Source: Chlorokybus atmophyticus (lineage: Eukaryota > Plantae > Mesostigma and Chlorokybus algae). Taken from it: a stretch of 64,000 bases of DNA. The stretch covers positions 1,047,842 through 1,111,841 of the forward strand of contig RHPI01002533.1 in NCBI GenBank assembly GCA_009103225.1, given 5' to 3'. The number at the start of each line of letters is the position of its first letter. Position 1 is the first letter of the stretch. Of this stretch, positions 584-58,048 are shown one piece after another. A program made the position numbers and the translations under genes. The notes beneath the pieces are model-generated. The model saw only the letters and a list, made by a program, of their open reading frames with translations, was not told the origin of the DNA and ran no database searches.

Positions 584-1109
584 TGTAACGGGAGCAATAA
601 TAATAGGGGTATTATTGCTACCTGAATAACACATTTTGTATGAATAAGTATTTAAATATGCTTATTTATACCTCTTTTCTACGGTTCCTCGCTTATTAAA
701 GGCTATGATGCTTTATCATAGCTTAAATAAGTCCCAATGGGTGTAGAACCGCTTATTCAAGCCTATTTAGTGTCACATTCGATATAATGTGATCACTATC
801 TCGTTAGGTACCTTACGATAGGTATCTTTGGATAGGTACCTTATCGATAGGTACCTTATCTGAGCTGTGATTGGCTCACGCTAGATTTCCTAACTACCCT
901 ATCTGTAGGGTCGATATCTAGTTGTGAGTTAATTATCGAGAGTTATATAGTTGATATACTCTTGATATAAAAGGTCACATCAATCTGATGTGGGGACTTT
1001 CAGTTCTCTGCTCAGTGGCGGCCACGCCGCTGAAAGGCTTGTCATAGGCGGTGTGGGTATTGGGGTAGAGGATTGAAGGGGCATCACCGGCGACGGTGGT
1101 GCTGTTACA
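584..1109 (+). repeat. 5' LTR of A1
   Basis: TG...CA ends; about 5 substitutions versus 7102-7627, counted by eye. Confidence 0.97.
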
Positions 1110-1124
1110 TTGGTATCCAGGAGC
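1110..1124 (+). other. Primer binding site (iMet-like variant TGGTATCCAGGAGC)
   Basis: Directly follows the 5' LTR. Resembles the canonical tRNA-iMet PBS TGGTATCAGAGC with two extra bases; same in A2. Confidence 0.75.
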
Positions 1125-2046
1125 TGGGGGGTGACGTGGGTACTTATAGGGGGCGGCGACCTGCTTTCGGCCAATCAGAAGCGTCGGCGGCGGCCTCCTA
1201 TTCGTCCACGCAGCCCAAGCTTCAAGTTCGCTTCCCTGCGCTACCTCCACGTTGAAGCCACCTATCAAAGAGGCGGCCTCTCCACGTGTGAGGTACCATC
1301 ACACGTCGGTGACTTGCCTGCTTGCCTGCTTGTCAGCTGCTTGCCAGGTGCTTGCCAAGTGCACGTGTGTACTTTCATGCACATCACACAGTGGCTTGCC
1401 AGTGCACTATCATTGCTTGCAGTAATTGCCTGTCATTGCATGCGGTGATTGCGGCTTGCTAGTGTGCCATCACTGTTTGTCACACTTAGTGCACTGTCAT
1501 TGCTTGCAGTGATTGCCTGTCATTGCATGCGGTGATTGCTTGTCATTGTGCTTGCCAGTGCATGTCACAGTTAGTCACCGTGCGGCTTGCCTGTTGCATG
1601 CCTGTGGCTTGCCTGTTGCATGCCTGTGACGTACCTGTGACCTGCCAGCGGCTTTGCCGGGTCGTTTGACCCGGGTCCGTAAGTTCCAAACCAAACTGTT
1701 CCCAAACCCTCCCCCTCTGGCTTCGGCCTGGAGATCGGGACTTGGTTAGGACAGTTGTGGGGAGGTTCTAGGACAATCTGTTCCCAAACCCTGTTAGTCT
1801 GAAACCCTCCCCCTCTGGCTTCGGCCTGGAGATTGGGACTTGGTTGAGGACAACACAGGGTTAGGACATTCTGGTCCCACTCAGACTTGTTCTGTTTGGT
1901 GACACTCCAGATCCAACCTTTCCTATTTTGGGACTGGTTTGGACTCTGTTTGGGACTTTTACAACTTGGGGTCATTTTGATCCTCTCGTTAAACCTGGTC
2001 CATTGGTGAGGTTCTCACCATCCCATTCTGCCTGTTTTGCAGGCAA

Positions 2047-3222
2047 ATGGAAGAAAACTCGGTGCCCACCTCAAAAGGGGAGAGCTCAGAAAAAGAGCAA
2101 CTTTCCCGTGAGGAGGAATTTCCATCCATGGAAGATATTCCGAATCCGGATGATGCACCTGATGAGTCTCAAGCTGCTAAAGCTGCGGAAGCTTCAGTGG
2201 ATGATAGATCACCTTCTATATTCCCTGAGTTTTCTATTCGCATGACACAGCAGGACTTGATGGAGCATTTCCTTAGCACCTATGATCAGGACCCTCGTGA
2301 GGCAATTGTCTCATTCGTGAACTTTCTCTTCCTATTGGCAGAAAAAGTTTCAAAGCTCACCACCTTTATGGGGCGAGATTGGGAGGGGCAGATGGGTGAA
2401 GGCAAACGTGTTCTGAATATGATCGAGCGTCTGCAGCGTGCTGACGGTGGTCCACCTGTTCAAGCACTTGCTCGTCCTGCCGAGTTTGTTCCCAACAAGC
2501 AAGCGGCCATCTTCGACTGGCTTGTGAAGTTGCGACACTATGTCAACTCCCTTCACATTTCTGAGGAGGGGAAATTGCGTGTAGCTGAGTTGCTGATCCC
2601 AAACGATGCTTTGGCAGAGTGGTACCGCCGTAAGCAACGGGATACCAACCTCGGGCGGGAAGTAAATCAGTTGTGCTTTTTCATGGAGCAGCGCTATGGT
2701 GGCGCAGATCCTGCCCAGGTTGCTCGCAACCAGCTGCACAACCTGCGTCAGAACGGGCGTCCGGTTCAGCAGTATATCCAGGATTTTCAGTCGTTTGTCA
2801 GCAAGATCAATGCTGGCAAACTACCTATCAGTGATGCTGATCAGCTGGATATGTTCAGGCGTGGCTTGGACACAGATCTCGTGCAGCATGTGGCCGTCAA
2901 CCCCGCGAGTTTGCAAGAGTGGGCCTCGACGGATTTACCAATGCTGATGCAGATGGTTGCTGCTGTGGACAGTGTAAAACGCTCTCACGCCAACATGCAA
3001 ACCACGGCAAAAGAGGCAGCCCCGGTTTCAGCTGCAAAGCGCCCGGCCACTGGCAACAAACCTTTTGTGAAAAAGGCGAAACCATCTCATCCTGCTGGCC
3101 CCTACAATGCGGCCAAATCCATCATCACTTGCAGTTTCTGCAAGAAGACAGGTCATGGGGAGGCTACGTGCTATGCAAAACAGAATGCACAGAAGGCCAA
3201 GCAGCAGAGAGAAAAGAAATAG
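2047..3222 (+). CDS. gag: Gag of A1 (capsid-like region plus CCHC knuckle CSFCKKTGHGEATC)
   Basis: 391-aa ORF with LRQNGRPVQQYIQDFQ retrotrans-gag-like segment and a zinc knuckle; ends in TAG. Confidence 0.9.
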   Translation: MEENSVPTSKGESSEKEQLSREEEFPSMEDIPNPDDAPDESQAAKAAEASVDDRSPSIFPEFSIRMTQQDLMEHFLSTYDQDPREAIVSFVNFLFLLAEKVSKLTTFMGRDWEGQMGEGKRVLNMIERLQRADGGPPVQALARPAEFVPNKQAAIFDWLVKLRHYVNSLHISEEGKLRVAELLIPNDALAEWYRRKQRDTNLGREVNQLCFFMEQRYGGADPAQVARNQLHNLRQNGRPVQQYIQDFQSFVSKINAGKLPISDADQLDMFRRGLDTDLVQHVAVNPASLQEWASTDLPMLMQMVAAVDSVKRSHANMQTTAKEAAPVSAAKRPATGNKPFVKKAKPSHPAGPYNAAKSIITCSFCKKTGHGEATCYAKQNAQKAKQQREKK

Positions 3223-6200
3223 GAATTGTCCGTGGTTGGTAGCTTAGTCGAGCAGAACGACTTTAAAAACTCTGTACTTCTTGATAAAGTTTCCTCTCTT
3301 TGCGATGTATCAGATGTATGGACTGATATGAGCACACCACCTGTGTTGAGAAATGCAAACGGTTGTGTTTTAATCAATGTTCCATTCTCTGAATTAGTAA
3401 CTGCTGTTAAGCACTTACACGAGTTGCAATTACAACATGCTATCACTGCATGTGTAGTTATCCCTCGATATCATGGCCCGTGGTCGCGATTGTTGAAAGG
3501 GGGAGAAGTAATCATGCAACTCTCACGCAAAGATACAGGAGCTTCACCATTGCAAGTGATCTTTATCAAGTCTGCTACCAATCACGGCACTCCGATATTA
3601 GCTACATTTGATGGTCACTCAGTGCCACTCAAATGGAGATTTGAGAGTCAACTTATGGGTACACCATGTACAGCATTGATTGATACTGGTGCAAACCATA
3701 ACTTTGTTGAACATGCTTGGGTGAAACGTAATAACATTCCTTTCACACCAGTCACGTCATATGTACGTGCTGCTGGTTCCACTCTCAATGCAATGGGAGA
3801 GGTAAAAGGGCGTTTTGTTATTAATGGCCATATAACCCGACCAGCCTTCATCGTGGTGGATATTGGTATCCCCGGGGTGGATGTTGTTTTAGGGGAACAA
3901 TGGCACACTGAAGCAGGTTTACAATTAGACTCTCGAGCCAATACGTGCACCCTTCGTAAAGGGAAACGTAGGATGACTTTAACAGCATCTGTACTCGCAC
4001 GTATACCACGCGATAATGTTCCGCTCCTCTCTGCTATGCAATTGAAACGTTGCATGCGTAAACGTGAGGAAGTATACTTACTGCACTTACGACAGGTGGA
4101 AACACCTGCTGAACAGGCTATCAGTGACCCTGTGGTGCAGTCACTTACGGAACAATACGCAGATGTATTTCAGGATGAACTCCCAGAGTTGCCTCCCGAT
4201 CGAAACATACATCATACCATTCCGTTAGAGGAGGGGGCAAAGCCACCTTGGCGGCCTATATACAGGCTAAGTCCCTTAGAACACGCGGAGATGGAAAAAC
4301 AGCTCAAAGAGTTATTGGACAAAGGTTTAATAACAAAGAGCATATCTCCTTTTGGTGCACCAATTTTGTTTGTGCCCAAAAAGAATGGCAAGCTACGCAT
4401 GTGTATTGATTACCGTGCGTTGAACAAGGTCACTGTGAAAAACAGATACCCTTTGCCTCGGATTGATGATTTGTTTGATAAGCTGTCAGGTGCAACAGTG
4501 TTCAGCACGCTGGATTTGACCAGTGGTTATCATCAAATCAAAATCCACCCGTCGGATATACAAAAAACTGCATTTCGCACCCCACTAGGACACTTTGAGT
4601 ATAAAGTGTTACCATTTGGGTTAACAAATGCACCGGCTACATTTCAGACAGCAATGAACGCGGTATTTGCTGATGAATTGTACAAGTTTGTACTGGTATA
4701 TCTAGACGACATTATTGTGTTCAGCAAAACCCGGGAGGACCACCACAAACATGTGGAATTGGTTCTAGCTAGATTACGTGAACACAAATTCTATGCCAAC
4801 CTGTCCAAATGCAACTTTGCAAAGGATGAACTACCCTTTTTAGGGCATGTGATTGGCAAAGAAGGATTGAAACCAGATCCTCAGAAGGTGTGTGCGGTAA
4901 AGGATTGGCCACCACCCAAGGATGTACATCAGTTACGTGCTTTCTTGGGGCTAGCCAATTATTTCCGCAAGTTCATGCGAGCATATTCTGGCATGGCAAA
5001 CCCTTTAACATCTTTACTAAGAAAAGATGTTAAATTTGTGTGGACGGAGGCACACGAGGTTGCTTTTACACGCATTAAAGATGCATTAACACAAGCCCCT
5101 GTGTTAGCCTTCCCCGACCACACCAAGCCTTTTGTGGTGATCAGTGATGCTTCCACCATTGGGTGTGGGGCAGTCCTTCTACAAGATGACAGACCATGTG
5201 CATATGAAAGCAGAAAGTTCATTCCTGCTGAACGTAATTACACAACCACTGAGCAGGAATTGCTCGGGGTGGTGCACGCGCTGCGCACATGGCGTTGCTA
5301 CTTGGAAGGGGTGGAGTTTTCAGTGATTACTGATCACAACCCGCTCACATTCTTTCATACGCAACAAAATCTGTCGAGGCGGCAAGCTAGGTGGAATGAA
5401 TTCATTTCTCGTTTCACTTTCACTTGGCAATACCGTCCGGGTCGCACCAATGTGGCGGATCCACTAAGTCGCAGCCCTGCTCTTTTGGCACTTACGCGCT
5501 CTCGAAGTACGCGTAATGTACAACAGCCTGAAGATCCTTTCTTAAAAGAAGTGTCCACAGGTTATAACTCAGATGATTGGTTTAGCAGTCAAACCAACTT
5601 GCAACAGCTTACTGCTGTTAGCAATCTGTGGTATAAAGGGGAGCAGTTGGCAATTCCCAACTCGGGCGACTTGCGTAAGCAATGCTTACATTCAGTGCAT
5701 GACCCGCCGTATGCTGGGCATTTGGGGAAACACAAAACACTCAAATCTGCGCAACAGTTATACTGGTGGCCGTCAATGTCAGCTGACGTGGATCAATATG
5801 TTCGCACATGTGACGTGTGTCAACGTAATAAGCCACTACGACAAAAACAAGCGGGATTGCTTAAACCATTGGCAATTCCAGAACAAAAGTGGGATAGTGT
5901 CAGTATGGATTTGATTACTGACCTACCTGAAACAGCAGCTAAATACACTGCTATTGTGGTTTTTGTCGACCGTTTGACTAAAATGGTGCATTTTGCCCCG
6001 TGTTGCACAACTGTAAGTGCACGGGACTTGGCACACTTATTTGTGTCCACGGTCTTTCGCGTTCACGGTATACCGCGTGAACTTGTCACAGATCGTGATC
6101 CTCGTTTTGTCTCCAAGTTTTGGCGAGAAGTCTGTGAATTGTTGGGGGTAAAACAAAGCATGTCGACTGCTTTCCACCCGCAAACGGACGGTCAAACTGA

Positions 6201-6954
6201 GCGAGCAAATCAAATACTGGAAGAAATGCTTCGCCACTATGTGGCTCCTAATCATGCTGATTGGGACAGGTACTTGCCAATGGCAGAGTTCGCTGTGAAC
6301 AACGCGTGGCAAGAAAGTGTAAAGGAAACCCCATTTTTCTTGAATTATGGGATTCGCCCAAACACACCAGCGTCATTGCGTGTACCTCGCAATGCCCTGA
6401 CTGTAACAGCGGCAAAGGAATTTGCCACTAATATGCAAGAAAATTTGGCTCGAGCCAAGCTGTGTCTGTCAGAAGCACAGGACAGGCAAAAAGCTTATGC
6501 TGATACACATCGAAAAATGGCCACTTTCGATGTCGGCGATAAAGTTTTGCTTAATGCAAAAAACATAACCATCAAAGGTACGGGTGCTCGCAAGTTGCTG
6601 CCCCGATGGTTAGGTCCTTTCTCTATCACTGATAGAGTTGGTACGCACGCTTATCGACTGCAATTGCCCCCAAGTGTGCGTATACACAACGTGTTTCATG
6701 TAAACTTGTTGAAACCTTACCGCTCAGACGGTAGAACACAGCCTCCACCACCGCCAATTGAGGTGGACAGCGAGCTCGAATACGAGGTGGAAGCTATATT
6801 GAACCATAAGCTAAATGGTCGAGGACGCGCAACTCGCTATTTGGTGAAATGGAAAGGGTATGGCCCGGAACATAACAGTTGGGAGCCCGACAGGCATCTT
6901 ACGCACTGCCGCGAGTTGCTTCGAGCTTATTGGGATTCATGTCCTGTCCCATAA
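3223..6954 (+). CDS. pol: Pol of A1: extra N-terminal domain, aspartic protease, RT, RNase H, integrase, chromodomain
   Basis: LIDTGA protease; YLDD RT; DAS...ELL RNase H; H2C2 zinc finger, D(LITD)/D(RD)/E integrase and GPF motif; EYEVEAIL...YLVKWKGY...NSWEP chromodomain. Same frame as gag. Confidence 0.97.
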   Translation, partial: ELSVVGSLVEQNDFKNSVLLDKVSSLCDVSDVWTDMSTPPVLRNANGCVLINVPFSELVTAVKHLHELQLQHAITACVVIPRYHGPWSRLLKGGEVIMQLSRKDTGASPLQVIFIKSATNHGTPILATFDGHSVPLKWRFESQLMGTPCTALIDTGANHNFVEHAWVKRNNIPFTPVTSYVRAAGSTLNAMGEVKGRFVINGHITRPAFIVVDIGIPGVDVVLGEQWHTEAGLQLDSRANTCTLRKGKRRMTLTASVLARIPRDNVPLLSAMQLKRCMRKREEVYLLHLRQVETPAEQAISDPVVQSLTEQYADVFQDELPELPPDRNIHHTIPLEEGAKPPWRPIYRLSPLEHAEMEKQLKELLDKGLITKSISPFGAPILFVPKKNGKLRMCIDYRALNKVTVKNRYPLPRIDDLFDKLSGATVFSTLDLTSGYHQIKIHPSDIQKTAFRTPLGHFEYKVLPFGLTNAPATFQTAMNAVFADELYKFVLVYLDDIIVFSKTREDHHKHVELVLARLREHKFYANLSKCNFAKDELPFLGHVIGKEGLKPDPQKVCAVKDWPPPKDVHQLRAFLGLANYFRKFMRAYSGMANPLTSLLRKDVKFVWTEAHEVAFTRIKDALTQAPVLAFPDHTKPFVVISDASTIGCGAVLLQDDRPCAYESRKFIPAERNYTTTEQELLGVVHALRTWRCYLEGVEFSVITDHNPLTFFHTQQNLSRRQARWNEFISRFTFTWQYRPGRTNVADPLSRSPALLALTRSRSTRNVQQPEDPFLKEVSTGYNSDDWFSSQTNLQQLTAVSNLWYKGEQLAIPNSGDLRKQCLHSVHDPPYAGHLGKHKTLKSAQQLYWWPSMSADVDQYVRTCDVCQRNKPLRQKQAGLLKPLAIPEQKWDSVSMDLITDLPETAAKYTAIVVFVDRLTKMVHFAPCCTTVSARDLAHLFVSTVFRVHGIPRELVTDRDPRFVSKFWREVCELLGVKQSMSTAFHPQTDGQTERANQILEEMLRHYVAPNHADWDRYLPMAEFAVNNAWQESVKETPFFLNYGIRPNTPASLRVPRNALTVTAAKEFATNMQENLARAKLCLSEAQDRQKAYADTHRKMATFDVGDKVLLNAKNITIKGTGARKLLPRWLGPFSITDRVGTHAYRLQLPPSVRIHNVFHVNLLKPYRSDGRTQPPPPPIEVDSELEYEVEAILNHKLNGRGRATRYLVKWKGYGPEHNSWEPDRHLTHCRELLRAYWDSCPVP

Positions 6955-7088
6955 ACTGTGGGCTTGGTTTTATGACAGACTGGCAGTGCAGTTTCATTAC
7001 CACCCTGTCATTTCCTGCTATCTCACTGGTTACAATTACTCGAAATCAAGCCTGATCAACTTGAGTTCAACGAGGACGTTGAAAACCT

Positions 7089-7101
7089 AAGTGGGGGGGA
7101 A
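7089..7101 (+). other. Polypurine tract of A1
   Basis: AAGTGGGGGGGAA immediately before the 3' LTR. Confidence 0.9.
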
Positions 7102-7627
7102 TGTAACGGGAGCAATAATAATAGGGGTATTATTGCTACCTGAATAACACATTTTGTATGAATAAGTATTTAAATATGCTTATTTATACCTCTTTTTTAC
7201 GGTTCCTCGCTTATTAAAGGGTATGATGCTTTATCATAGCTTAAATAAGTCCCAATGGGTGTAGAACCGCTTATTCAAGCCTGTTTAGTGTCACATTCGA
7301 TATAATGTGATCACTATCTCGTTAGGTACCTTACGATAGGTATCTTTGGATAGGTACCTTATCGATAGGTACCTTATCTGAGCTGTGATTGGCTCACGCT
7401 AGATTTCCTAACTACCCTATCTGTAGGGTCGATATCTAGTTGTGAGTTAATTATCGAGAGTTATATAGTTGATATACTCTTAATATAAAAGGTCACATCA
7501 ATCTGATGTGGGGACTTTCAGTTCTCTGCTCAGTGGCGGCCACGCCGCTGAAAGGCTTGGCATAGGCGGTGTGGGTATTGGGGTAGAGGATTGAAGGGGC
7601 ATCACCGGCGACGGTGGTGCTGTTACA
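7102..7627 (+). repeat. 3' LTR of A1
   Basis: Direct repeat of 584-1109, followed by TSD AGGTG. Confidence 0.97.
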
Positions 7628-17506: not shown

Positions 17507-18006
17507 TGTAACAAGTGGGCTCCGACCACTAGGCTATTGTAACAAAAGACGCTACCATGAGTGAGGTCTGTCACAATTTATCCCCCCAATTCGTAACATT
17601 CCTCCCCCTTTTAACTCACGGGTTCCTCATTATCCAATGAAGCACTTACTAGCCCATGTCGCCGTGATCACGGCTGTATTACGACCGGTTTGCCCGTGGC
17701 CTGTTGAATCTGGCTTACAAATGGTATAACCGACCGAACTGCAGCGGCCACCCTCACCGCGCGACCCGCCATCGCGGCCATAGGTCCAACTAGCTCGGCG
17801 CGCAGGTTGCGAACTTGCGCCCAGCCTAGGGCAAGCCGCCCCTAGTGTTTTGTTGCCATTGGATCTGCCTCAGTCCCCTACGGGAATTAAACCTGAGAGG
17901 TCAAGCTCCATTGCCATTGTAACAAGTGGGCTCCGACCACTAGGCTGTGGTAGCAAAAGACGCTACTATGAGTGAGGTCTGTCACAATTTATCCCAAATC
18001 GTGACA
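17507..18006 (-). mobile_element. TRIM-like non-autonomous mini LTR element (TRIM-1, 500 bp)
   Basis: LTRs 17918-18006 (89 bp) and 17507-17598 (92 bp), about 90% identical, TG...CA ends; PBS-like TGGCAATGGAGC (17905-17916); PPT AAAAGGGGGAGGAA (17599-17612); TSD CGCGC at 17502-17506 and 18007-18011. Confidence 0.9.
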
Positions 18007-49079: not shown

Positions 49080-49661
49080 TGTTGAGGATATTCTTGTGTC
49101 CGGTCAGCTTGCCATGTGGATAAGAATAGCCGCGAGAAGATTCAGGCGCGAGAAGGTTCCAGTCGAGAAAGGTCCAGGCGAGGACTTCAGTCGAGAAGGT
49201 TTCAGGCGCGGAGTCGAGTCCGGAGTCTGGAGACCGCCAGGCGCTGTAGAAGAAACGTTGTAGCTCGGTGGTTACGTCATTTTATGGTGCGTGTCATAGC
49301 TTGTTGGAAAGCTCTTGAAAGTACCTAAGTGGTGCAATTTAGAGCGCAGGAATCAGTTGAGTGTAAAAGTCGTGGTGGCTTTTAGAGTAGACAGGTGCAG
49401 AACTGGCGGGTATAAAAGCCCGCGGTGTGACTTTGTTGTAATCCTTAGAAAGCCCTTTGGATCAGCCTTGTGTGTATGCTCTGGTAGAGTGTGTGTACTT
49501 GTGCCTGCACCAACTCCATGCATGGTCAGTAGTGTCCGAATCTCCAAAGGTTATGGGCCCACACTACGCTGGTCTAGCAAGTGTCTAGAGGCGTGATAAC
49601 GGCAGTAGGCTAGGCAAGGAGTTCTAGCTAAGTCTTGTGAGGTTGGGTTGAGTCCTGGAAG

Positions 49662-50744
49662 ATGGCAACCAACTATGACAAGGTGACCGTGGAGCCTTTG
49701 GACGTGGACAACTACAACACATGGAGCGTGCGCATGAAGATGTTGCTAGTACACAAAGACTTGTGGGAATGGGTGGACCCGGAGGAGGCAGACCCTATGT
49801 CTACAAGGCAGAGTTCGGTGTTTAAGCAGCAGAGTGGGAGAGCGCTTGCCATGATCGGTCTCAACGTGAAGGATCATCACTTGGTGTTGGTGGATGGCTG
49901 CAAGACTGCACGAGAGGCTTGGGAGAAATTGGCATCGCACTTCAAGGCGAAGAATAGCGCGAGGAAGGTGCAGCTGAAGAGAGAGCTCGCTGGGTTGAAG
50001 AAGCAAGGCGCAGCGGAGCCTCTTACCAAGTATGTGTCGCGTGCACGAGAGTTGCAAAAGGATCTTCAAGGCGTTGGCTATGAGGTGAAAGAGTCCGAGT
50101 TGGTGTGGCAAGTATTGTCCGGGTTGCCTGAAGACTATGACACGGTGATCACGGTCTTGGAGGGCTTGGAGGCAGAACCCACGGTGGACGAGATGGTTCC
50201 AAGATTGCTGCAGGTGGAGTCGAGGCTGGCGAAGAAGCATGAGGAAGGCCCAGAGGCGTTGGCTTTCTCAGCGATTTCAGGAAGAAGTACTGATCGTTTT
50301 CAGCATGGGTCTGGGCGTTTCAGTGGTGATGGTGGCGGTTCTAGTGGTGGTGGTAGAGGAGCGTCAAGAAGTGACAGGGTCTGCTACTATTGCGGGAAGA
50401 AGGGCCACATCAGGGTGCATTGCTCGATGAGGAAGCAGCACGAAGAGGAGCGTGGTGGAGAGAAGCATCATGCCATGACGGGACGTGTTCGAGAAACGCC
50501 TATTGCCTTTCATGCAACAACGGATGGTGAGGCAGCTGGGTTGGGTGCTGGACTCGGGTTGCACGAGGCATATGACGGGTGATCGTGAGAAGTTGGCGAA
50601 GTACAAGGCCTTGGAGAAACCTATGAAGGTGAAGTTCGGCAAGACGGAGGTGTTCGCGATTGGTGTAGGAGAAGTCAAAATCCTGTTCCAGGTTGGAGGA
50701 AGGACGAGGCAAGTGTTGTTGAGAGAGGTTTTGTATGTCCCAGG
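49662..50744 (+). CDS. gag: Copia Gag (DUF4219/UBN2-like, CCHC CYYCGKKGHIRVHC) and protease (WVLDSGCTRHMT), one +1 frameshift near 50540
   Basis: LDVDNYNTWSVRM, LSGLPEDYDTVIT and EVLYVPG motifs. Confidence 0.88.
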
Positions 50745-51350
50745 TGTAACGGGAAGGTACATTAAATAACCACAAATCGACCATAAAAGCACCAAGTCTT
50801 TTGTGGTCGAGTGGGCTGTGACATTGGTCATCGGAGCTTGAGACCCGGGTTCGATTCCTGCCTCGCACACGAATTCCGCGGTCGTTGTTTCTCGATCCAA
50901 TAATCGTAAATGGTCACTTTATGAGTGCCATCATCGATGGGTCGCGACTTGCCTAATGGCAGTCGCGCCGAACTGACCAGTTCAGTCGGCGCGGCAGGGC
51001 GCGACCTGCCTATCGCGGCGACGCGACCTGTGGGGCCGGCAGCGGCGCGCTATGCGCGCGTTGACCGGTTTGGGCCTAAATTGGCCGGTCCTTGGATGGT
51101 GGGGCCGGTGACCGACCCTAAATCAGACCCCTGGGAAGATTCCCCAGCTGATGGCCGCCAGCTGCCGAGGACGTCAGCGTTCTTAAGTGGGGGGCAATGT
51201 AACGGGAAGGTACATTAAATAACCACAAATCGACCATAAAAGCACCAAGTCTTTTGTGGTCGAGTGGGCTGTGACATTGGTCATCGGAGCTTGAGACCCG
51301 GGTTCGATTCCTGCCTTGCACACGAATTCCGCGGTCGTTGTTTCTCGATC
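50745..51350 (+). mobile_element. Tandem-array TRIM-like element (TRIM-2): 79-bp LTRs, 453-bp unit
   Basis: LTR 50745-50823, PBS-like TTGGTCATCGGAGC, internal region, PPT AAGTGGGGGGCAA, identical LTR 51198-51276, then a second PBS and internal region running into the gap. Confidence 0.85.
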
Positions 51351-51850
51351 NNNNNNNNNNNNNNNNNNNNNNNNNNNNNNNNNNNNNNNNNNNNNNNNNN
51401 NNNNNNNNNNNNNNNNNNNNNNNNNNNNNNNNNNNNNNNNNNNNNNNNNNNNNNNNNNNNNNNNNNNNNNNNNNNNNNNNNNNNNNNNNNNNNNNNNNNN
51501 NNNNNNNNNNNNNNNNNNNNNNNNNNNNNNNNNNNNNNNNNNNNNNNNNNNNNNNNNNNNNNNNNNNNNNNNNNNNNNNNNNNNNNNNNNNNNNNNNNNN
51601 NNNNNNNNNNNNNNNNNNNNNNNNNNNNNNNNNNNNNNNNNNNNNNNNNNNNNNNNNNNNNNNNNNNNNNNNNNNNNNNNNNNNNNNNNNNNNNNNNNNN
51701 NNNNNNNNNNNNNNNNNNNNNNNNNNNNNNNNNNNNNNNNNNNNNNNNNNNNNNNNNNNNNNNNNNNNNNNNNNNNNNNNNNNNNNNNNNNNNNNNNNNN
51801 NNNNNNNNNNNNNNNNNNNNNNNNNNNNNNNNNNNNNNNNNNNNNNNNNN
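51351..51850. other. Assembly gap (500 N, probably placeholder size)
   Basis: N run. Confidence 1.
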
Positions 51851-54800
51851 GGGGAAATTGCGTGTAGCTGAGTTGCTGATCCCAAACGATGCTTTGGCAG
51901 AGTGGTACCGCCGTAAGCAACGGGATACCAACCTCGGGCGGGAAGTAAATCAGTTGTGCTTTTTCATGGAGCAGCGCTATGGTGGCGCAGATCCTGCCCA
52001 GGTTGCTCGCAACCAGCTGCACAACCTGCGTCAGAACGGGCGTCCGGTTCAGCAGTATATCCAGGATTTTCAGTCGTTTGTCAGCAAGATCAATGCTGGC
52101 AAACTACCTATCAGTGATGCTGATCAGCTGGATATGTTCAGGCGTGGCTTGGACACAGATCTCGTGCAGCATGTGGCCGTCAACCCCGCGAGTTTGCAAG
52201 AGTGGGCCTCGACGGATTTACCAATGCTGATGCAGATGGTTGCTGCTGTGGACAGTGTAAAACGCTCTCACGCCAACATGCAAACCACGGCAAAAGAGGC
52301 AGCCCCGGTTTCAGCTGCAAAGCGCCCGGCCACTGGCAACAAACCTTTTGTGAAAAAGGCGAAACCATCTCATCCTGCTGGCCCCTACAATGCGGCCAAA
52401 TCCATCATCACTTGCAGTTTCTGCAAGAAGATAGGTCATGGGGAGGCTACGTGCTATGCAAAACAGAATGCACAGAAGGCCAAGCAGCAGAGAGACAAGA
52501 AATAGGAATTGTCCGTGGTTGGTAGCTTAGTCGAGCAGAACGACTTTAAAAACTCTGTACTTCTTGATAAAGTTTCCTCTCTTTGTGATGTATCAGATGT
52601 ATGGACTGATATGAGCACACCACCTGTGTTGATAATCAATGTTCCAAACGATTGTGTTTTAATCAATGTTCCATTCTCTGACTTAGTAACTGCTGTTACG
52701 CACTTACACAAGTTGCAATTACAACATGCTGTCACTGCATGTGTAGTTATCCCTCGATATCATGGCCCGTGGTCACGATTGTTGAAAGGGGGAGAAGTAA
52801 TCATGCAACTCTCACGCAAAGATACAGGAGCTTCACCATTGCAAGTGATCTTGATCAAGTCTGCTACCAATCACGGCACTCCAACATTAGCTACATTTGA
52901 TGGTCACTCAGTGCCACTCAAATGGAGATTTGAGAGTCAACTTATGAATACACCATGTACAGCATTGATTGATACTGGTGCAAACCATAACTTTGTTGAA
53001 TATGCTTGGGTGAAACGTAATAACATTCCTTTCACACCCGTCACGTCATATGTACGTGCTGCTGGTTCCACTCTCAATGCAATGGGAGAGGTAAAAGAGC
53101 GTTTTGTTATTAATGGCCATATAACCCGACCAGCCTTCATCGTGGTGGATATGAATATCCCCGGGGTGGATGTTGTTTTAGGGGAACAATGGCACACTGA
53201 AGCAGGTTTACAATTAGACTCTCGAGCCAATACGTGCACCCTTCGTAAAGGGAAACGTAGGATGACTTTAACAGCATCTGTACTCGCACGTATACCACGC
53301 GATAATGTTCCGCTCCTCTCTGCTATGCAATTGAAACGTTGCATGCGTAAACGTGAGGACGTATACTTACTGCACTTACGACAGGTGGAAACACCTGCTG
53401 AACAGGCTATCAGTGACCCTGTGGTGCAGTCACTTACGGAACAATACGCAGATGTATTTCAGGATGAACTCCCAGAGTTGCCTCCCGATCGAAACATACA
53501 TCATACCATTCCGTTAGAGGAGGGGGCAAAGCCACCTTGGCGGCCTATATACAGGCTAAGTCCCTTAGAACACGCGGAGATGGAAAAACAGCTCAAAGAG
53601 TTATTGGACAAAGGTTTAATAACAAAGAGCATATCTCCTTTTGGTGCACCAATTTTGTTTGTGCCCAAAAAGAATGGCAAGCTACGCATGTGTATTGATT
53701 ACCGTGCGTTGAACAAGGTCACTGTGAAAAACAGATACCCTTTGCCTCGGATTGATGATTTGTTTGATAAGCTGTCAGGTGCAACAGTGTTCAGCACGCT
53801 GGATTTGACCAGTGGTTATCATCAAATCAAAATCCACCCGTCGGATATACAAAAAACTGCATTTCGCACCCCACTAGGACACTTTGAGTATAAAGTGTTA
53901 CCATTTGGGTTAACAAATGCACCGGCTACATTTCAGACAGCAATGAACGCGGTATTTGCTGATGAATTGTACAAGTTTGTACTGGTATATCTAGACGACA
54001 TTATTGTGTTCAGCAAAACCCGGGAGGACCACCACAAACATGTGGAATTGGTTCTAGCTAGATTACGCGAACACAAATTCTATGCCAACCTGTCCAAATG
54101 CAACTTTGCAAAGGATGAACTACCCTTGTTAGGGCATGTGATTGGCAAAGAAGGATTGAAATCAGATCCTCAAAAGGTGTGTGCGGTAAAGGATTGGCCA
54201 CCACCCAAGGATGTACATCAGTTACGTGCTTTCTTGGGGCTAGCCAATTATTTCCGCAAGTTCATGCGAGCATATTCTGGCATGGCAAATCCTTTAACAT
54301 CTTTACTAAGAAAAGATGTTAAATTTGTGTGGACGGAGGCACACGAGGTTGCTTTTACACGCATTAAAGATGCATTAACACAAGCCCCTGTGTTAGCCTT
54401 CCCCGACCACACCAAGCCTTTTGTGGTGATCAATGATGCTTCCACCATTGGGTGTGGGGCAGTCCTTCTACAAGATGACAGACCATGTGCATATGAAAGC
54501 AGAAAGTTCATTCCTGCTGAACGTAATTACATAACCACTGAGCAGGAATTGCTCGGGGTGGTGCACGCGCTGCGCACATGGCGTTGCTACTTGGAAGGGG
54601 TGGAGTTTTCAGTGATTACTGATCACAACCCGCTCACATTCTTTCATACGCAACAAAATCTGTCGAGGCGGCAAGCTAGGTGGAATGAATTCATTTCTTG
54701 TTTCACTTTCACTTGGCAATACCGTCCGGGTCGCACCAATGTGGCGGATCCACTAAGTCGCAGCCCCGCTCTTTTGGCACTTACGCGCTCTTGAAGTACG

Positions 54801-56916
54801 CGTAATGTACAACAGCCTGAAGATCCTTTCTTAAAAGAAGTGTCCACAGGTTATAACTCAAATGATTGGTTTAGCAGTCAAACCAACTTGCAACAGCTTA
54901 CTGCTGTTAGCAATCTGTGGTATAAAGGGGAGCAGTTGGCAATTCCCAACTCGGGCGACTTGCGTAAGCAATGCTTACATTCAGTGCATGACCCGCCGTA
55001 TGCTGGGCATTTGGGGAAACACAAAACACTCAAATCTGCGCAACAGTTATACTGGTGGCCGTCAATGTCAGCTGACGTGGATCAATATGTTCGCACATGT
55101 GACGTGTGTCAGCGTAATAAGCCACTACGACAAAAACAAGCGGGATTGCTTAAACCATTGGCAATTCCAGCACAAAAGTGGGATAGTGTCAGTATGGATT
55201 TGATTACTGACCTACCTGAAACAGCAGCTAAATACACTGCTATTGTGGTTTTTGTCGACCGTTTGACTAAAATGGTGCATTTTGCCCCGTGTTGCACAAC
55301 TGTAAGTGCACGGGACTTGGCACACTTATTTGTGTCCACGGTCTTTCGCGTTCACGGTATACCGCGTGAACTTGTTACAGATTGTGATCCTCGTTTTGTC
55401 TCAAAGGTTTGGCGAGAAGTCTGTGAATTGTTGTGGGTAAAACAAAGCATGTCGACTGCTTTCCACCCGCAAACGGACGGTCAAACTGAGCGAGCAAATC
55501 AAATACTGGAAGAAATGCTTCGCCACTATGTGGCTCCTAATCATGCTGATTGGGACAGGTACTTGCCAATGGCAGAGTTCGCTGTGAACAACGCGTGGCA
55601 AGAAAGTGTAAAGGAAACCCCATTTTTCTTAAATTATGGGATTCGCCCAAACACACCAGCGTCATTGCGTGTACCTCGCAATGCCCTGACTGTGCCAGCG
55701 GCAAAGGAATTTGCCACTAATATGCAAGAAAATTTGGCTCGAGCCAAGCTGTGTCTGTCAGAAGCACAGGACAGGCAAAAAGCTTATGCTGATACACATC
55801 GAAAAATGGCCACTTTCGATGTCAGCGATAAAGTTTTGCTTAATGCAAAAAACATAACCATCAAAGGTACGGGTGCTCGCAAGTTGCTGCCCCGATGGTT
55901 AGGTCCTTTCTCTATCACTGATAGAGTTGGTACGCACGCTTATCGACTGCAATTGCCCCCAAGTGTGCGTATACACAACGTGTTCCATGTGAACTTGTTG
56001 AAACCTTACCGCTCAGACGGTAGAACACAGCCTCCACCACCGCCAGTTGAGGTGGACAGCGAGCTCGAATACGAGGTGGAAGCTATATTGAACCATAAGC
56101 TAAATGGTCGAGGACGCGCAACTCGCTATTTGGTGAAATGGAAAGGGTATGGCCCGGAACATAACAGTTGGGAGCCCGACAGGCATCTTACGCACTGCCG
56201 CGAGTTGCTTCGAGCTTATTGGGATTCATCTCCCGTCCCATAAACTGTGGGCTTGGTTTTATGACAGACTGGCAGTGCAGTTTCATTACCACCCTGTCAT
56301 TTCCTGCTATCTCACTGGTTATAATTACTCGAAATCAAGCCTGATCAACTTGAGTTCAACGAGGACGTTGAAAACCTAAGTGGGGGGGAATGTAACGGGA
56401 GCAATAATAATAGGGGTATTATTGCTACCTAAATAACACATTTTGTATGAATAAGTATTTAAGTATGCTTATTTATACCTCTTTTCTACGGTTCCTCGCT
56501 TATCAAAGGCTATGATGCTTTATCATAGCTTAAATAAGTCCCAATGGGTGTAGAACCGCTTATTCAAGCCTATTTAGTGTCACATTTGATATAATGTGAT
56601 AACTATCTCGTTAGGTACCTTACGATAGGTATTTTTGGATAGGTACCTTATCGATAGGTACCTTATCTGAGCTGTGATTGGCTCACGCTAGATTTCCTAA
56701 CTACCCTATCTGTAGGGTCGATGTCTAGTTGTGAGTTAATTATCGAGAGGTATATAGTTGATATACTCTTGATATAAAAGGTCACATCAATCTGATGTGG
56801 GGACTTTCAGTTCTCTGCTCAGTGGCGGCCACGCCGTTGAAAGGCTTGTCATAGGCGGTGTGGGTGTTGGGGTAGAGGATTGAAGGGGCATCACCGGCGA
56901 CGGTGGTGCTGTTACA
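51851..56916 (+). mobile_element. Family A chromovirus copy A3 (5' part in gap; pol nonsense mutation)
   Basis: gag 3' half to TAG 52503-52505; pol 52506-56243 with TGA at 54792-54794; PPT; 3' LTR 56391-56916 followed by CCAGG. Confidence 0.95.
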
Positions 56917-57525
56917 CCAGGGCTAGAGGTTAGCCTATTCTCTGTGCGCATCGCGGCGAGAGTTGGTGCTGTGACAGTGTTTAGTGGGGACATAGGAAGG
57001 GTAGTGCTGCGTGGTGTCTCAGAGTTGGTTGGCATCAACGTTGGAGGGCTCCACATCATTAAGGAGGTCAAGGGTGCGGAGATGCACAAGAAGACCAAGG
57101 TGGAGGTGTCCAAGTCAGCACCGGTTGTGAAGAAGATGACGAAGAAGGCCAAGGTCGAGCCCGTTACTCATAAGGGAGCGGGAGCTCAAGAGAAGGTGAC
57201 GAAGAGCGTGTCACATGCGAGTGGTGGAGTGATTCCATGTGTGGAGGTTGCTGGTGGTGTCAAGAAGGCTGAAGGTGCAGTTCCGGAGCCCGTGGGAGCC
57301 AAAGGAGGCGTTGGCATTAGCAAGGACAAGAAGGAGAAGCATGGTGGTGGTGGTGTGCAGGACGTTGCCGAGAGTGAGCACGTGGGAGCACATGCAAATG
57401 ACCATGAGAGTTGCAATAAGGGTGTGCAAGTGAAGAGCTTCAAGGAGGCGCTCATGAGAGGTGCGGGAAGTGTTTTCAAGATGGTTGGAAGAGCAAAGGA
57501 TGGCGTGGGAGTTCATCGCGCATAA
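56917..57525 (+). CDS. Continuation of the Copia ORF after the insertion: end of protease region plus Lys/Val/Gly-rich tail
   Basis: Removing the insertion and one CCAGG gives EVLYVPG|LEVSLFSV, the Copia consensus; in frame to TAA at 57523-57525. Confidence 0.8.
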   Translation, partial: PGLEVSLFSVRIAARVGAVTVFSGDIGRVVLRGVSELVGINVGGLHIIKEVKGAEMHKKTKVEVSKSAPVVKKMTKKAKVEPVTHKGAGAQEKVTKSVSHASGGVIPCVEVAGGVKKAEGAVPEPVGAKGGVGISKDKKEKHGGGGVQDVAESEHVGAHANDHESCNKGVQVKSFKEALMRGAGSVFKMVGRAKDGVGVHRA

Positions 57526-58048
57526 GTACGCAAGGAGTTGGCATCGAAGGTGTTAAAGGCCAAGCTGCCCGCGTGGGAGTGTTGAGGATATTCTTGTGTC
57601 CGGTCAGCTTGCCATGTGGATAAGAATAGCCGCGAGAAGATTCAGGCGCGAGAAGGTTCCAGTCAAGAAAGGTCCAGGCGAGGACTTCAGTCGAGAAGGT
57701 TTCAGGCGCGGAGTCAAGTCCGGAGTCTGGAGACCTCCAGGCGCTGTAGAAGAAACGTTGTAGCTCGGTGGTTACGTTATTGTATGGCGCGTGTCATAGC
57801 TTGTTGGTTAGCTCTTGAAAGTACCTACGTGGTGCAACTTAGAGCGCAGGAACCGGTTGAGTGTAGAAGTCGTGGTGGCTTCTAGAGTAGACAGGTGCAG
57901 AACTGGCGGGTATAAAAGCCCGCGGTATGACTTTGTTGTAATCCTTAAAAAGCCTTTTGGATCAGCCTTGTGTGTATGCTCTGGTAGAGTGTGTGTACTT
58001 GTGCTTGTACCAACTCCATGCATGGTCAGTAGTGTCCGAATCTCAACA

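Follow-up and report, generated by a model that had tools for sequence, protein, structure and literature searches.

This study concerns a short retroelement, named TRIM-2 here, which lies at 50745-51350 of a 64,000-nucleotide stretch of the genome of the streptophyte alga Chlorokybus atmophyticus (assembly GCA_009103225.1, contig RHPI01002533.1, positions 1,047,842 to 1,111,841 of the forward strand), referred to below as the window. TRIM-2 is a terminal-repeat retrotransposon in miniature (TRIM), and our analysis suggests that its long terminal repeat (LTR) ends within the remnant of a glycine tRNA, so that the A-box of a type-2 promoter for RNA polymerase III (Pol III) would lie in the LTR and the B-box in the interior, on the far side of the primer-binding site (PBS). 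We put the probability that this module is a functional promoter at about 0.45, and we give the same value to the best explanation as a whole, in which TRIM-2 would be a chromovirus-mobilised TRIM with a split tRNA-Gly Pol III promoter.

Results

The TRIM-2 unit is 453 bp long, is composed of a 79-bp LTR and a 374-bp interior, and is present 1.34 times on the plus strand. The first LTR (50745-50823, TGTAAC...GTGACA) and the second (51198-51276), which is the shared LTR of a head-to-tail array, are identical at 79 of 79 positions, and the array is therefore young; over the longer stretch that can be compared, 50745-50897 against 51198-51350, there is a single base difference (C or T at 50864). 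The putative PBS, TGGTCATCGGAGCTTGAG (50825-50842), starts with TGG only 1 nt past the LTR, at the place that the anticodon arm occupies in a tRNA, and resembles the PBS TGGTATCCAGGAGC of an autonomous element in the window, called family A here. At the other end of the interior a polypurine tract (PPT), AAGTGGGGGG (51185-51194), stops 3 nt short of the next LTR. The interior itself (50824-51197) is GC-rich and non-coding; the longest open reading frame (ORF) in the unit encodes 97 amino acids, and no Pfam family was found in it. A second interior begins at 51277 with PBS and B-box and is broken off at 51350 by an assembly gap of 500 Ns (51351-51850), inside which the right end of the array lies. 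Two short direct TG..CA LTRs, a length of less than 1 kb, a PBS and a PPT, and the lack of coding sequence are the marks of a TRIM, and it is nearly certain that TRIM-2 is one and that it is arranged in a tandem, LTR-sharing, head-to-tail array. The initial annotation of this stretch had likewise called it a tandem TRIM.

Public sequencing runs, among them X1, X2, X3 and X5, were examined as contigs; X2 and X3 are DNA contigs, and X1 is RNA by guess only. Other genomic copies of TRIM-2 in these contigs fix the ends of the LTR, with unrelated flanks just before 50745 and 51198 and just after 51276. In two DNA runs the contigs of TRIM-2 reach a depth of 150-900, compared with 15-20 for the flank, and they come in many variants, which shows that TRIM-2 is a multi-copy family. 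The second copy in the window does end at the 500-N gap, as would be expected of a tandem repeat that arose as an artefact of assembly where a contig ends. However, an internal-LTR-internal contig is present in the independent run X1 (joint 51317 to 50865), and the head-to-tail arrangement is therefore not specific to this assembly; the many variant copies in X2 and X3 also argue against an artefact.

An A-box-like sequence, TGGTCGAGTGG, is located in the LTR at 50804-50814 and corresponds to tRNA positions 8-19, and a B-box, GGTTCGATTCC, which corresponds to positions 52-62, is located beyond the LTR at 50848-50858. The two start 44 nt apart and the pattern recurs 453 nt on (TGGTCGAGTGG at 51257-51267 and GGTTCGATTCC at 51301-51311), exactly as had been claimed. 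Both boxes had been described as perfect, which is true of the B-box (10/10 to the consensus GGTTCGANTCC) but not of the A-box (8/9 to TRGCNNAGTGG). Just upstream, a run of four Ts (T4) at 50799-50802, which recurs at 51252-51255, forms part of an 8-mer, GTCTTTTG (50796-50803), that is shared with a second family and may serve as a Pol III terminator and as the end of the terminal redundancy (R) of the RNA. Within the unit TTTT occurs only at 50799, as the initial annotation noted, but the T4-free interior of 374 nt had to be dropped as evidence for Pol III, since 34% of dinucleotide shuffles are likewise without TTTT and the absence is not significant.

We scanned the window for pairs of boxes on the same strand, 30-60 nt apart, with at least 8/9 matches to TRGCNNAGTGG and at least 8/10 to GGTTCGANTCC. 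Such pairs are found in TRIM-2 (twice) and in a second element, TRIM-1, only, and none is found in the autonomous family A, while simulated windows of the same composition contain 0.17 pairs on average; the pattern is therefore real and not a product of chance. A lone B-box-like 11-mer is not rare, with 0.64 expected in 64 kb at no more than one mismatch, but pairs in register confined to TRIMs, together with the uninterrupted match to tRNA-Gly described below, leave the idea of a chance resemblance, like that of an assembly artefact, close to refuted. Across the copies in runs X1 to X3, the A-box has no variant at 10% or more among the variants listed; among these, none is common at 50786-50863, compared with about 15 in the interior.

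TRIM-1, at 17507-18006 of the minus strand, is complete and occurs singly; its LTRs measure 89 bp, and its target-site duplication is GCGCG (18011-18007 and 17506-17502). It also has split boxes, at a distance of 54 nt from A to B, with CAGCCTAGTGG as A-box, TGTTACA as LTR end and GGTTTAATTCC as B-box, and its 3' LTR is followed by flanking sequence without a B-box. The two families had been called unrelated, and it is correct that they cannot be aligned overall and that no homology was found between their interiors; nevertheless, they have collinear motif blocks in a common order, which are the LTR start TGTNACG, GTCTTTTG, A-box, LTR end, TGG, GGAGCTTGA and B-box. As the initial annotation observed, GTCTTTTG before the A-box and GGAGCTTGA before the B-box stand at equivalent places in both; the former is present in both LTRs of TRIM-1 and the latter is found nowhere else in the window. 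The argument that the same architecture in two families speaks against chance holds in view of the expected number of pairs, but it was overstated, because TRIM-1 and TRIM-2 may share one inherited module rather than represent two independent inventions. We also observed that the T4 of TRIM-1 is part of the loop of a small hairpin, GTAGC-GTCTTTT-GCTAC, and is followed at once by an acceptor-like GCTACCA.

The origin of the boxes was traced through the literature. A search with the 17-mer GACCCGGGTTCGATTCC led to a plant pre-tRNA-Gly(GCC), which is used in vectors for tRNA-guide RNA expression and whose sequence is printed in PMC6037947, and to human tRNA-Gly isoacceptors, which carry the 17-mer too (PMC4928997). 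TRIM-2 was compared with the plant sequence by eye, with no computed alignment. In this comparison a decayed tRNA-Gly(GCC)-like module extends over the LTR end, the PBS and the leader (50789-50869, plus strand), for which there is also a weak Rfam match. tRNA positions 44-62 (50841-50858) agree at 18/18, the A-box at 10/11 and the 5' acceptor strand (GCACCAA, 50789-95) at 6/7. The 3' acceptor strand agrees at only 4/7 and the anticodon arm at 5/17, which is the random level. If the T at 50804 is numbered as position 8, the D-stem is GTCG/TGAC, the LTR ends (50823) at position 26, AGAC is the variable loop and CCGGG-TTCGATT-CCTGC is the T-arm. The 17 nt TTGGTCATCGGAGCTTG, made up of spacer and PBS, stand in place of the 17-nt anticodon arm, and the 8-mer GTCTTTTG is an insertion that separates the acceptor strand from position 8. 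The decayed positions are 20-43 and 63-72, which either have been taken over by retroelement functions or are dispensable for a promoter. The boxes very probably derive from a tRNA-Gly of the GCC type, whose anticodon arm, to judge from this numbering, is swapped length for length by the spacer and PBS.

A tRNA search had been recommended for naming the donor, but neither Rfam nor ARAGORN made a significant call, and it was the literature comparison that named tRNA-Gly. A metagenome search with the degenerate pattern GGAGCTTGA-N(5-8)-GGTTNNATTCCYG returned 92 loci. Most of them are tRNA genes whose anticodon, NCG, specifies arginine and which appear to be prokaryotic tRNA-Arg genes, and the rest are chance-like; no TRIM is among the 92, and the exact 29-mer that spans A-box, LTR end and PBS has no metagenome match. 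The anticodon-loop-to-T-arm half of arginine tRNAs happens to share a 9-mer with the PBS region of the TRIMs. We rejected tRNA-Arg as the donor, as an artefact of the search pattern, since tRNA-Gly accounts also for the A-box and the acceptor strand; a pattern search alone is thus an unsafe basis for naming a donor tRNA. An origin of the PBS-flanking sequence by read-through into the primer tRNA was rejected as well, since the T-loop reads in the sense direction and is offset by 8 nt from the place it would have in an extended primer complement.

Folding analysis reveals a strong hairpin in the LTR (50770-50814, plus strand, -22.9 kcal/mol), which the initial annotation had missed. Its 5' arm is CCAC..TCGACCATAAAAG, its loop is CACCAAG, and its 3' arm, CTTTTGTGGTCGAGTGG, contains both T4 and A-box. 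With a z-score of -4.3 and none of 200 shuffles as good, this hairpin is unusually stable, and it has a counterpart at 51223-51267. In the fold of a unit-length RNA the 3' arm, which then stands at the 5' end, forms 17 bp with the 5' arm close to the 3' end, so that the RNA termini are brought together; the whole RNA has a z of -5.0. The TRIM-2 interior is structured too (z -4.6), with stacked hairpins that include those at 50943-50967, 50965-50992 and 50994-51011. The core hairpins that had been reported do exist, although two of them contain bulges. A structured core had also been taken as a feature of the whole class, which we had to abandon, since the interior of TRIM-1 is not unusually structured (z -0.5). 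The packaging signal that the initial annotation proposed for the core likewise has no structural parallel in TRIM-1.

The autonomous family A is the likely partner of TRIM-2. Its full-length copy at 584-7627 (plus strand) has an LTR of the form TGTAACGGGAG...GCTGTTACA, the PBS TTGGTATCCAGGAGC, the PPT AAGTGGGGGGG and a target-site duplication of AGGTG. A 3' portion of 5.1 kb at 51851-56916 (plus strand), 98.6% identical to 2568-7627, ends in an LTR (TGTTACA), and a third copy lies at 31915-24843 on the minus strand. Pfam domains appear in the order gag, then PR-RT-RNaseH-INT-SH3_Tf2-1-Chromo, with the gag and pol ORFs open, and family A is therefore a Ty3/Gypsy chromovirus and not a Copia element. 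Its LTRs are 98-99% identical and three copies occur in 64 kb; it has probably been active recently. TRIM-2 and family A have in common the first ten bases of the LTR, TGTAACGGGA, the termini TGTAACGGGA / GCTGTNACA and the PBS start TTGGT, the LTR end being GCTGTTACA in family A and GCTGTGACA in TRIM-2. The PPT of TRIM-2, TAAGTGGGGGGCAA, also matches TAAGTGGGGGGGAA before the 3' LTR of family A (z 3.2), and beyond the PPT no significant similarity was found between the TRIM-2 interior and the family A leader. On these sequence features family A is probably the helper of TRIM-2, and would replicate it in trans through the shared LTR ends, as putative integrase sites, and the shared PPT. The Tf2-type integrase SH3 and the chromodomain of family A led us to consider self-priming of the Tf1 type, which we rejected, as the LTRs of TRIM-2, TRIM-1 and family A have no complementarity of at least 7 nt to the first 37 interior nt.

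The two elements are also joined physically. A single CCAGG duplication brackets the TRIM-2 array on the left (50740-50744) and the family A LTR at the end of the 5.1-kb portion on the right (56917-56921), so that the duplication belongs to a composite insertion of TRIM-2 and family A. The insertion lies inside a decayed Copia element, called element X, whose LTRs are at 49080-49544 and 57580-58044 and whose reading frame continues across it (..VLYVPG followed by LEVSLFSV, resuming at 56922). Contigs of X2 and X3 contain the empty site, in which 50744 runs straight into 56922 onward. This composite may have integrated in one step as a recombinant of TRIM-2 and family A, or TRIM-2 may have inserted into family A and a deletion at the common TGTAACGGGA may then have trimmed the nested pair. 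If confirmed, a composite with one duplication would be rare direct evidence of recombination between a TRIM and its helper before integration. Element X itself carries stops and a frameshift in gag-PR. A few bases past its 5' LTR (49545-49570) lies GGTTATGGGCCCA, which is complementary to the anticodon stem-loop of initiator tRNA-Met and points to priming of the copia/Ty5 type by a 3'-truncated tRNA.

Discussion

Our results suggest a specific way in which TRIM-2 may be transcribed. A copy of tRNA-Gly would straddle the boundary between LTR and interior, with the 5' acceptor strand and the D-arm, which includes the A-box, in the LTR, and the variable loop and the T-arm, which includes the B-box, in the leader. 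Such a promoter would be complete only at LTR-interior junctions, that is, at the 5' LTR and at the internal LTR of an array, and incomplete at a 3' or solo LTR. Transcription would start a few nucleotides upstream of 50789, pass the early T4 without stopping and terminate only when it meets the T4 of the next LTR, and would give an RNA of about 465 nt with an R of no more than 20 nt. The 17-bp pairing between the RNA ends, provided by the arms of the LTR hairpin, may aid the first strand transfer despite so short an R. The 5'-3' interaction in Ty1 RNA offers an analogy for this pairing.

Several of our findings weigh against this proposal. ARAGORN detects no tRNA, and neither does Rfam in the 1.35 kb from 50000 to 51351 at E<=10; the best Rfam match of a 101-nt stretch is to the tRNA clan on the plus strand, with 12.7 bits (E 3.4) against a gathering score of 47, and the corresponding stretch of TRIM-1 has no match at all. 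The predicted fold of the tRNA-like stretch is not a cloverleaf, and its stability is no better than that of shuffled sequences (z +0.23). These results rule out a functional tRNA gene. The T4, about 10-15 nt past the predicted start, would have to let the polymerase pass at the 5' LTR and yet terminate transcription at the next, and in TRIM-1 it lies directly upstream of the tRNA-like +1, which leaves an R of only about 6-10 nt. Since T4 and A-box belong to one hairpin arm, they could be conserved within TRIM-2 for the sake of the structure. The sole fragment from an RNA library, a contig of the metatranscriptome X5 with an insert of about 133 nt (about 50791-50923) between Illumina adapters, spans the T4 and starts 13 nt upstream of the A-box; it is possibly one molecule sequenced from both ends. 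Its strand is ambiguous, with the read-1 adapter on the plus side indicating antisense RNA if the library is dUTP-stranded, and DNA contamination is possible. We do not count this fragment as support for Pol III transcription. The X5 sample is plant-associated, and the insert carries common variants of the TRIM-2 family (T at 50864 and AC inserted after 50902), so that a Chlorokybus-like alga or its nucleic acid was present in the sample.

The LTR can also be read as an ordinary LTR for RNA polymerase II (Pol II), and this provides the main rival to a functional Pol III promoter. TRIM-2 would then be a Pol II-transcribed TRIM, and its tRNA-Gly remnant would be the relic of an inserted tRNA or SINE (short interspersed nuclear element), surviving only through the youth of the copies or through its overlap with the LTR end and the PBS. 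The 79 bp of the LTR do hold a compact set of the parts needed, with a TATA-like box, TAAATAA, at 50763-69, an A-rich poly(A) signal, ATAAAAG, at 50783-89, a start just downstream near 50790 and GTCTTTTG as a U-rich cleavage region, and the LTR of family A has a similar TATAAAAG. The X5 fragment begins 25-30 nt past TAAATAA, the tRNA-like stretch is without acceptor and anticodon stems and goes undetected as a tRNA, and the identical LTR copies are in keeping with a relic preserved by youth. However, one would not expect a relic to persist in both TRIM-1 and TRIM-2, which in other respects can no longer be aligned. The B-box lies outside both LTR and PBS and has no role in Pol II transcription, yet it fits its consensus completely; likewise, the match to tRNA-Gly is unbroken over positions 44-62, whereas the adjoining positions 63-72 are decayed. 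We regard the Pol II explanation as a serious possibility, although we lean against it.

It may also be asked whether the tRNA-like arms work in the RNA rather than in the DNA. As a tRNA mimic, the D- and T-arms that flank the PBS would recruit a tRNA-binding factor, or assist in positioning the primer tRNA or in packaging the RNA, whichever polymerase makes it, much as the tRNA-like element beside the PBS of HIV-1 is thought to act. The geometry of TRIM-2 is attractive in this respect, since the PBS falls exactly where a tRNA has its anticodon arm, the exchange being 17 nt for 17 nt and the boxes keeping the tRNA-like spacing of 44 nt, and since the sequence allows a D-stem and a T-stem of 4 bp each, the latter with a canonical T-loop of 7 nt. 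But the minimum-free-energy fold is not of this form, and the A-box pairs with upstream LTR sequence in the LTR hairpin instead. TRIM-1, moreover, keeps the boxes with neither the geometry nor the arms, its tRNA arms being gone and its motifs retained, and what is conserved is therefore sequence motifs and not RNA structure. This pattern fits a promoter at the DNA level better than it fits a tRNA mimic, and we consider the mimic improbable.

If the split promoter does operate, TRIM-2 and its relatives would be a source of tRNA-like sequences, and possibly of TFIIIC sites, across the genome. For annotation, our results advise caution, since LTR-PBS junctions, though parts of LTR elements, may be mistaken for SINEs or for fragments of tRNAs. 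The likeness to tRNA-derived SINEs (SINE2) is considerable, as these also keep a decayed tRNA head for its boxes and are short non-coding retroelement parasites; they differ in having no LTRs, PBS or PPT and in depending on the target-primed reverse transcription of long interspersed nuclear elements, whereas TRIM-2 is built from the parts of an LTR element. Retrozymes are likewise small non-coding LTR elements with an unusual RNA module in their terminal repeats and a structured interior, but a search of TRIM-2 for the hammerhead ribozyme gave no match on either strand at E<=10.

TRIMs with Pol III promoters derived from small RNAs are known in two groups, and the class of Pol III-transcribed LTR parasites inferred in the initial annotation is not new, since Cassandra and the elements Helenus and Ajax already define it. 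In Cassandra the LTR is 240-350 bp long. Like TRIM-2, Cassandra is a TRIM of streptophytes, and its LTR has a Pol III promoter and a T-run terminator (Kalendar et al. 2008). The terminal duplications of its RNA are 18 bp, as summarised in PMC10886601, and LTR-internal-LTR tandem arrays of Cassandra are frequent (PMC7215508). It differs in that its promoter is of type 1, is derived from 5S rRNA and lies wholly inside the LTR, and in that its transcription has been shown experimentally, while that of TRIM-2 is predicted; no match to 5S rRNA, nor to any other known RNA module, was found at E<=10 in 50000-51351.

The closest known relatives in design are Helenus, with a tRNA-derived promoter, and Ajax, with a 5S-derived one, which have been united as "TRIMp3" (Kojima 2024, Biology 13:119; PMC10886601). 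Helenus resembles TRIM-2 as a non-autonomous TRIM with PBS and PPT, and has a 5-bp target-site duplication. Its tRNA-derived boxes A and B, which TRIM-2 has as well, are not part of a functional tRNA, and its Pol III promoter, too, is presumed without experimental validation. Tandem arrays are known from a fish Helenus, and Helenus is mobilised by an autonomous LTR element to which it is similar in the PBS region. The partners of Helenus are Copia elements in fungi and Gypsy elements in animals, and that of TRIM-2 would be a Ty3/Gypsy chromovirus with a 5-bp duplication; the LTR of TRIM-2, at 79 bp, compares with the 120 bp given for Helenus-1_SMo in the same article (PMC10886601). The important difference is in the placement of the boxes. 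Helenus has both inside the LTR, whereas the LTR of TRIM-2 holds only the A-box half and the B-box is internal, and neither TRIM-2 nor TRIM-1 has the complete tRNA sequence within the LTR. What is new is this placement of the boxes across the LTR/PBS junction, of which we found no description in the literature. It is conceivable, and we suggest it tentatively, that TRIM-2 represents a distinct architecture of Pol III LTR elements, in which the anticodon arm is swapped for the LTR terminus and the PBS, the 3' and solo LTRs are silent and R does not exceed 20 nt. In the plant lineage Helenus is reported from Selaginella only and from no alga (PMC10886601), so that TRIM-2, if our interpretation is true, would be the first TRIMp3 known from an alga, would have a chromovirus for its helper, and would extend the reach of this group to the earliest-diverging streptophyte algae. 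A working split promoter would give LTR elements a second way to use Pol III, in which the B-box beyond the LTR limits initiation to the junction of 5' LTR and interior and avoids the promoter duplication seen in Cassandra and Helenus.

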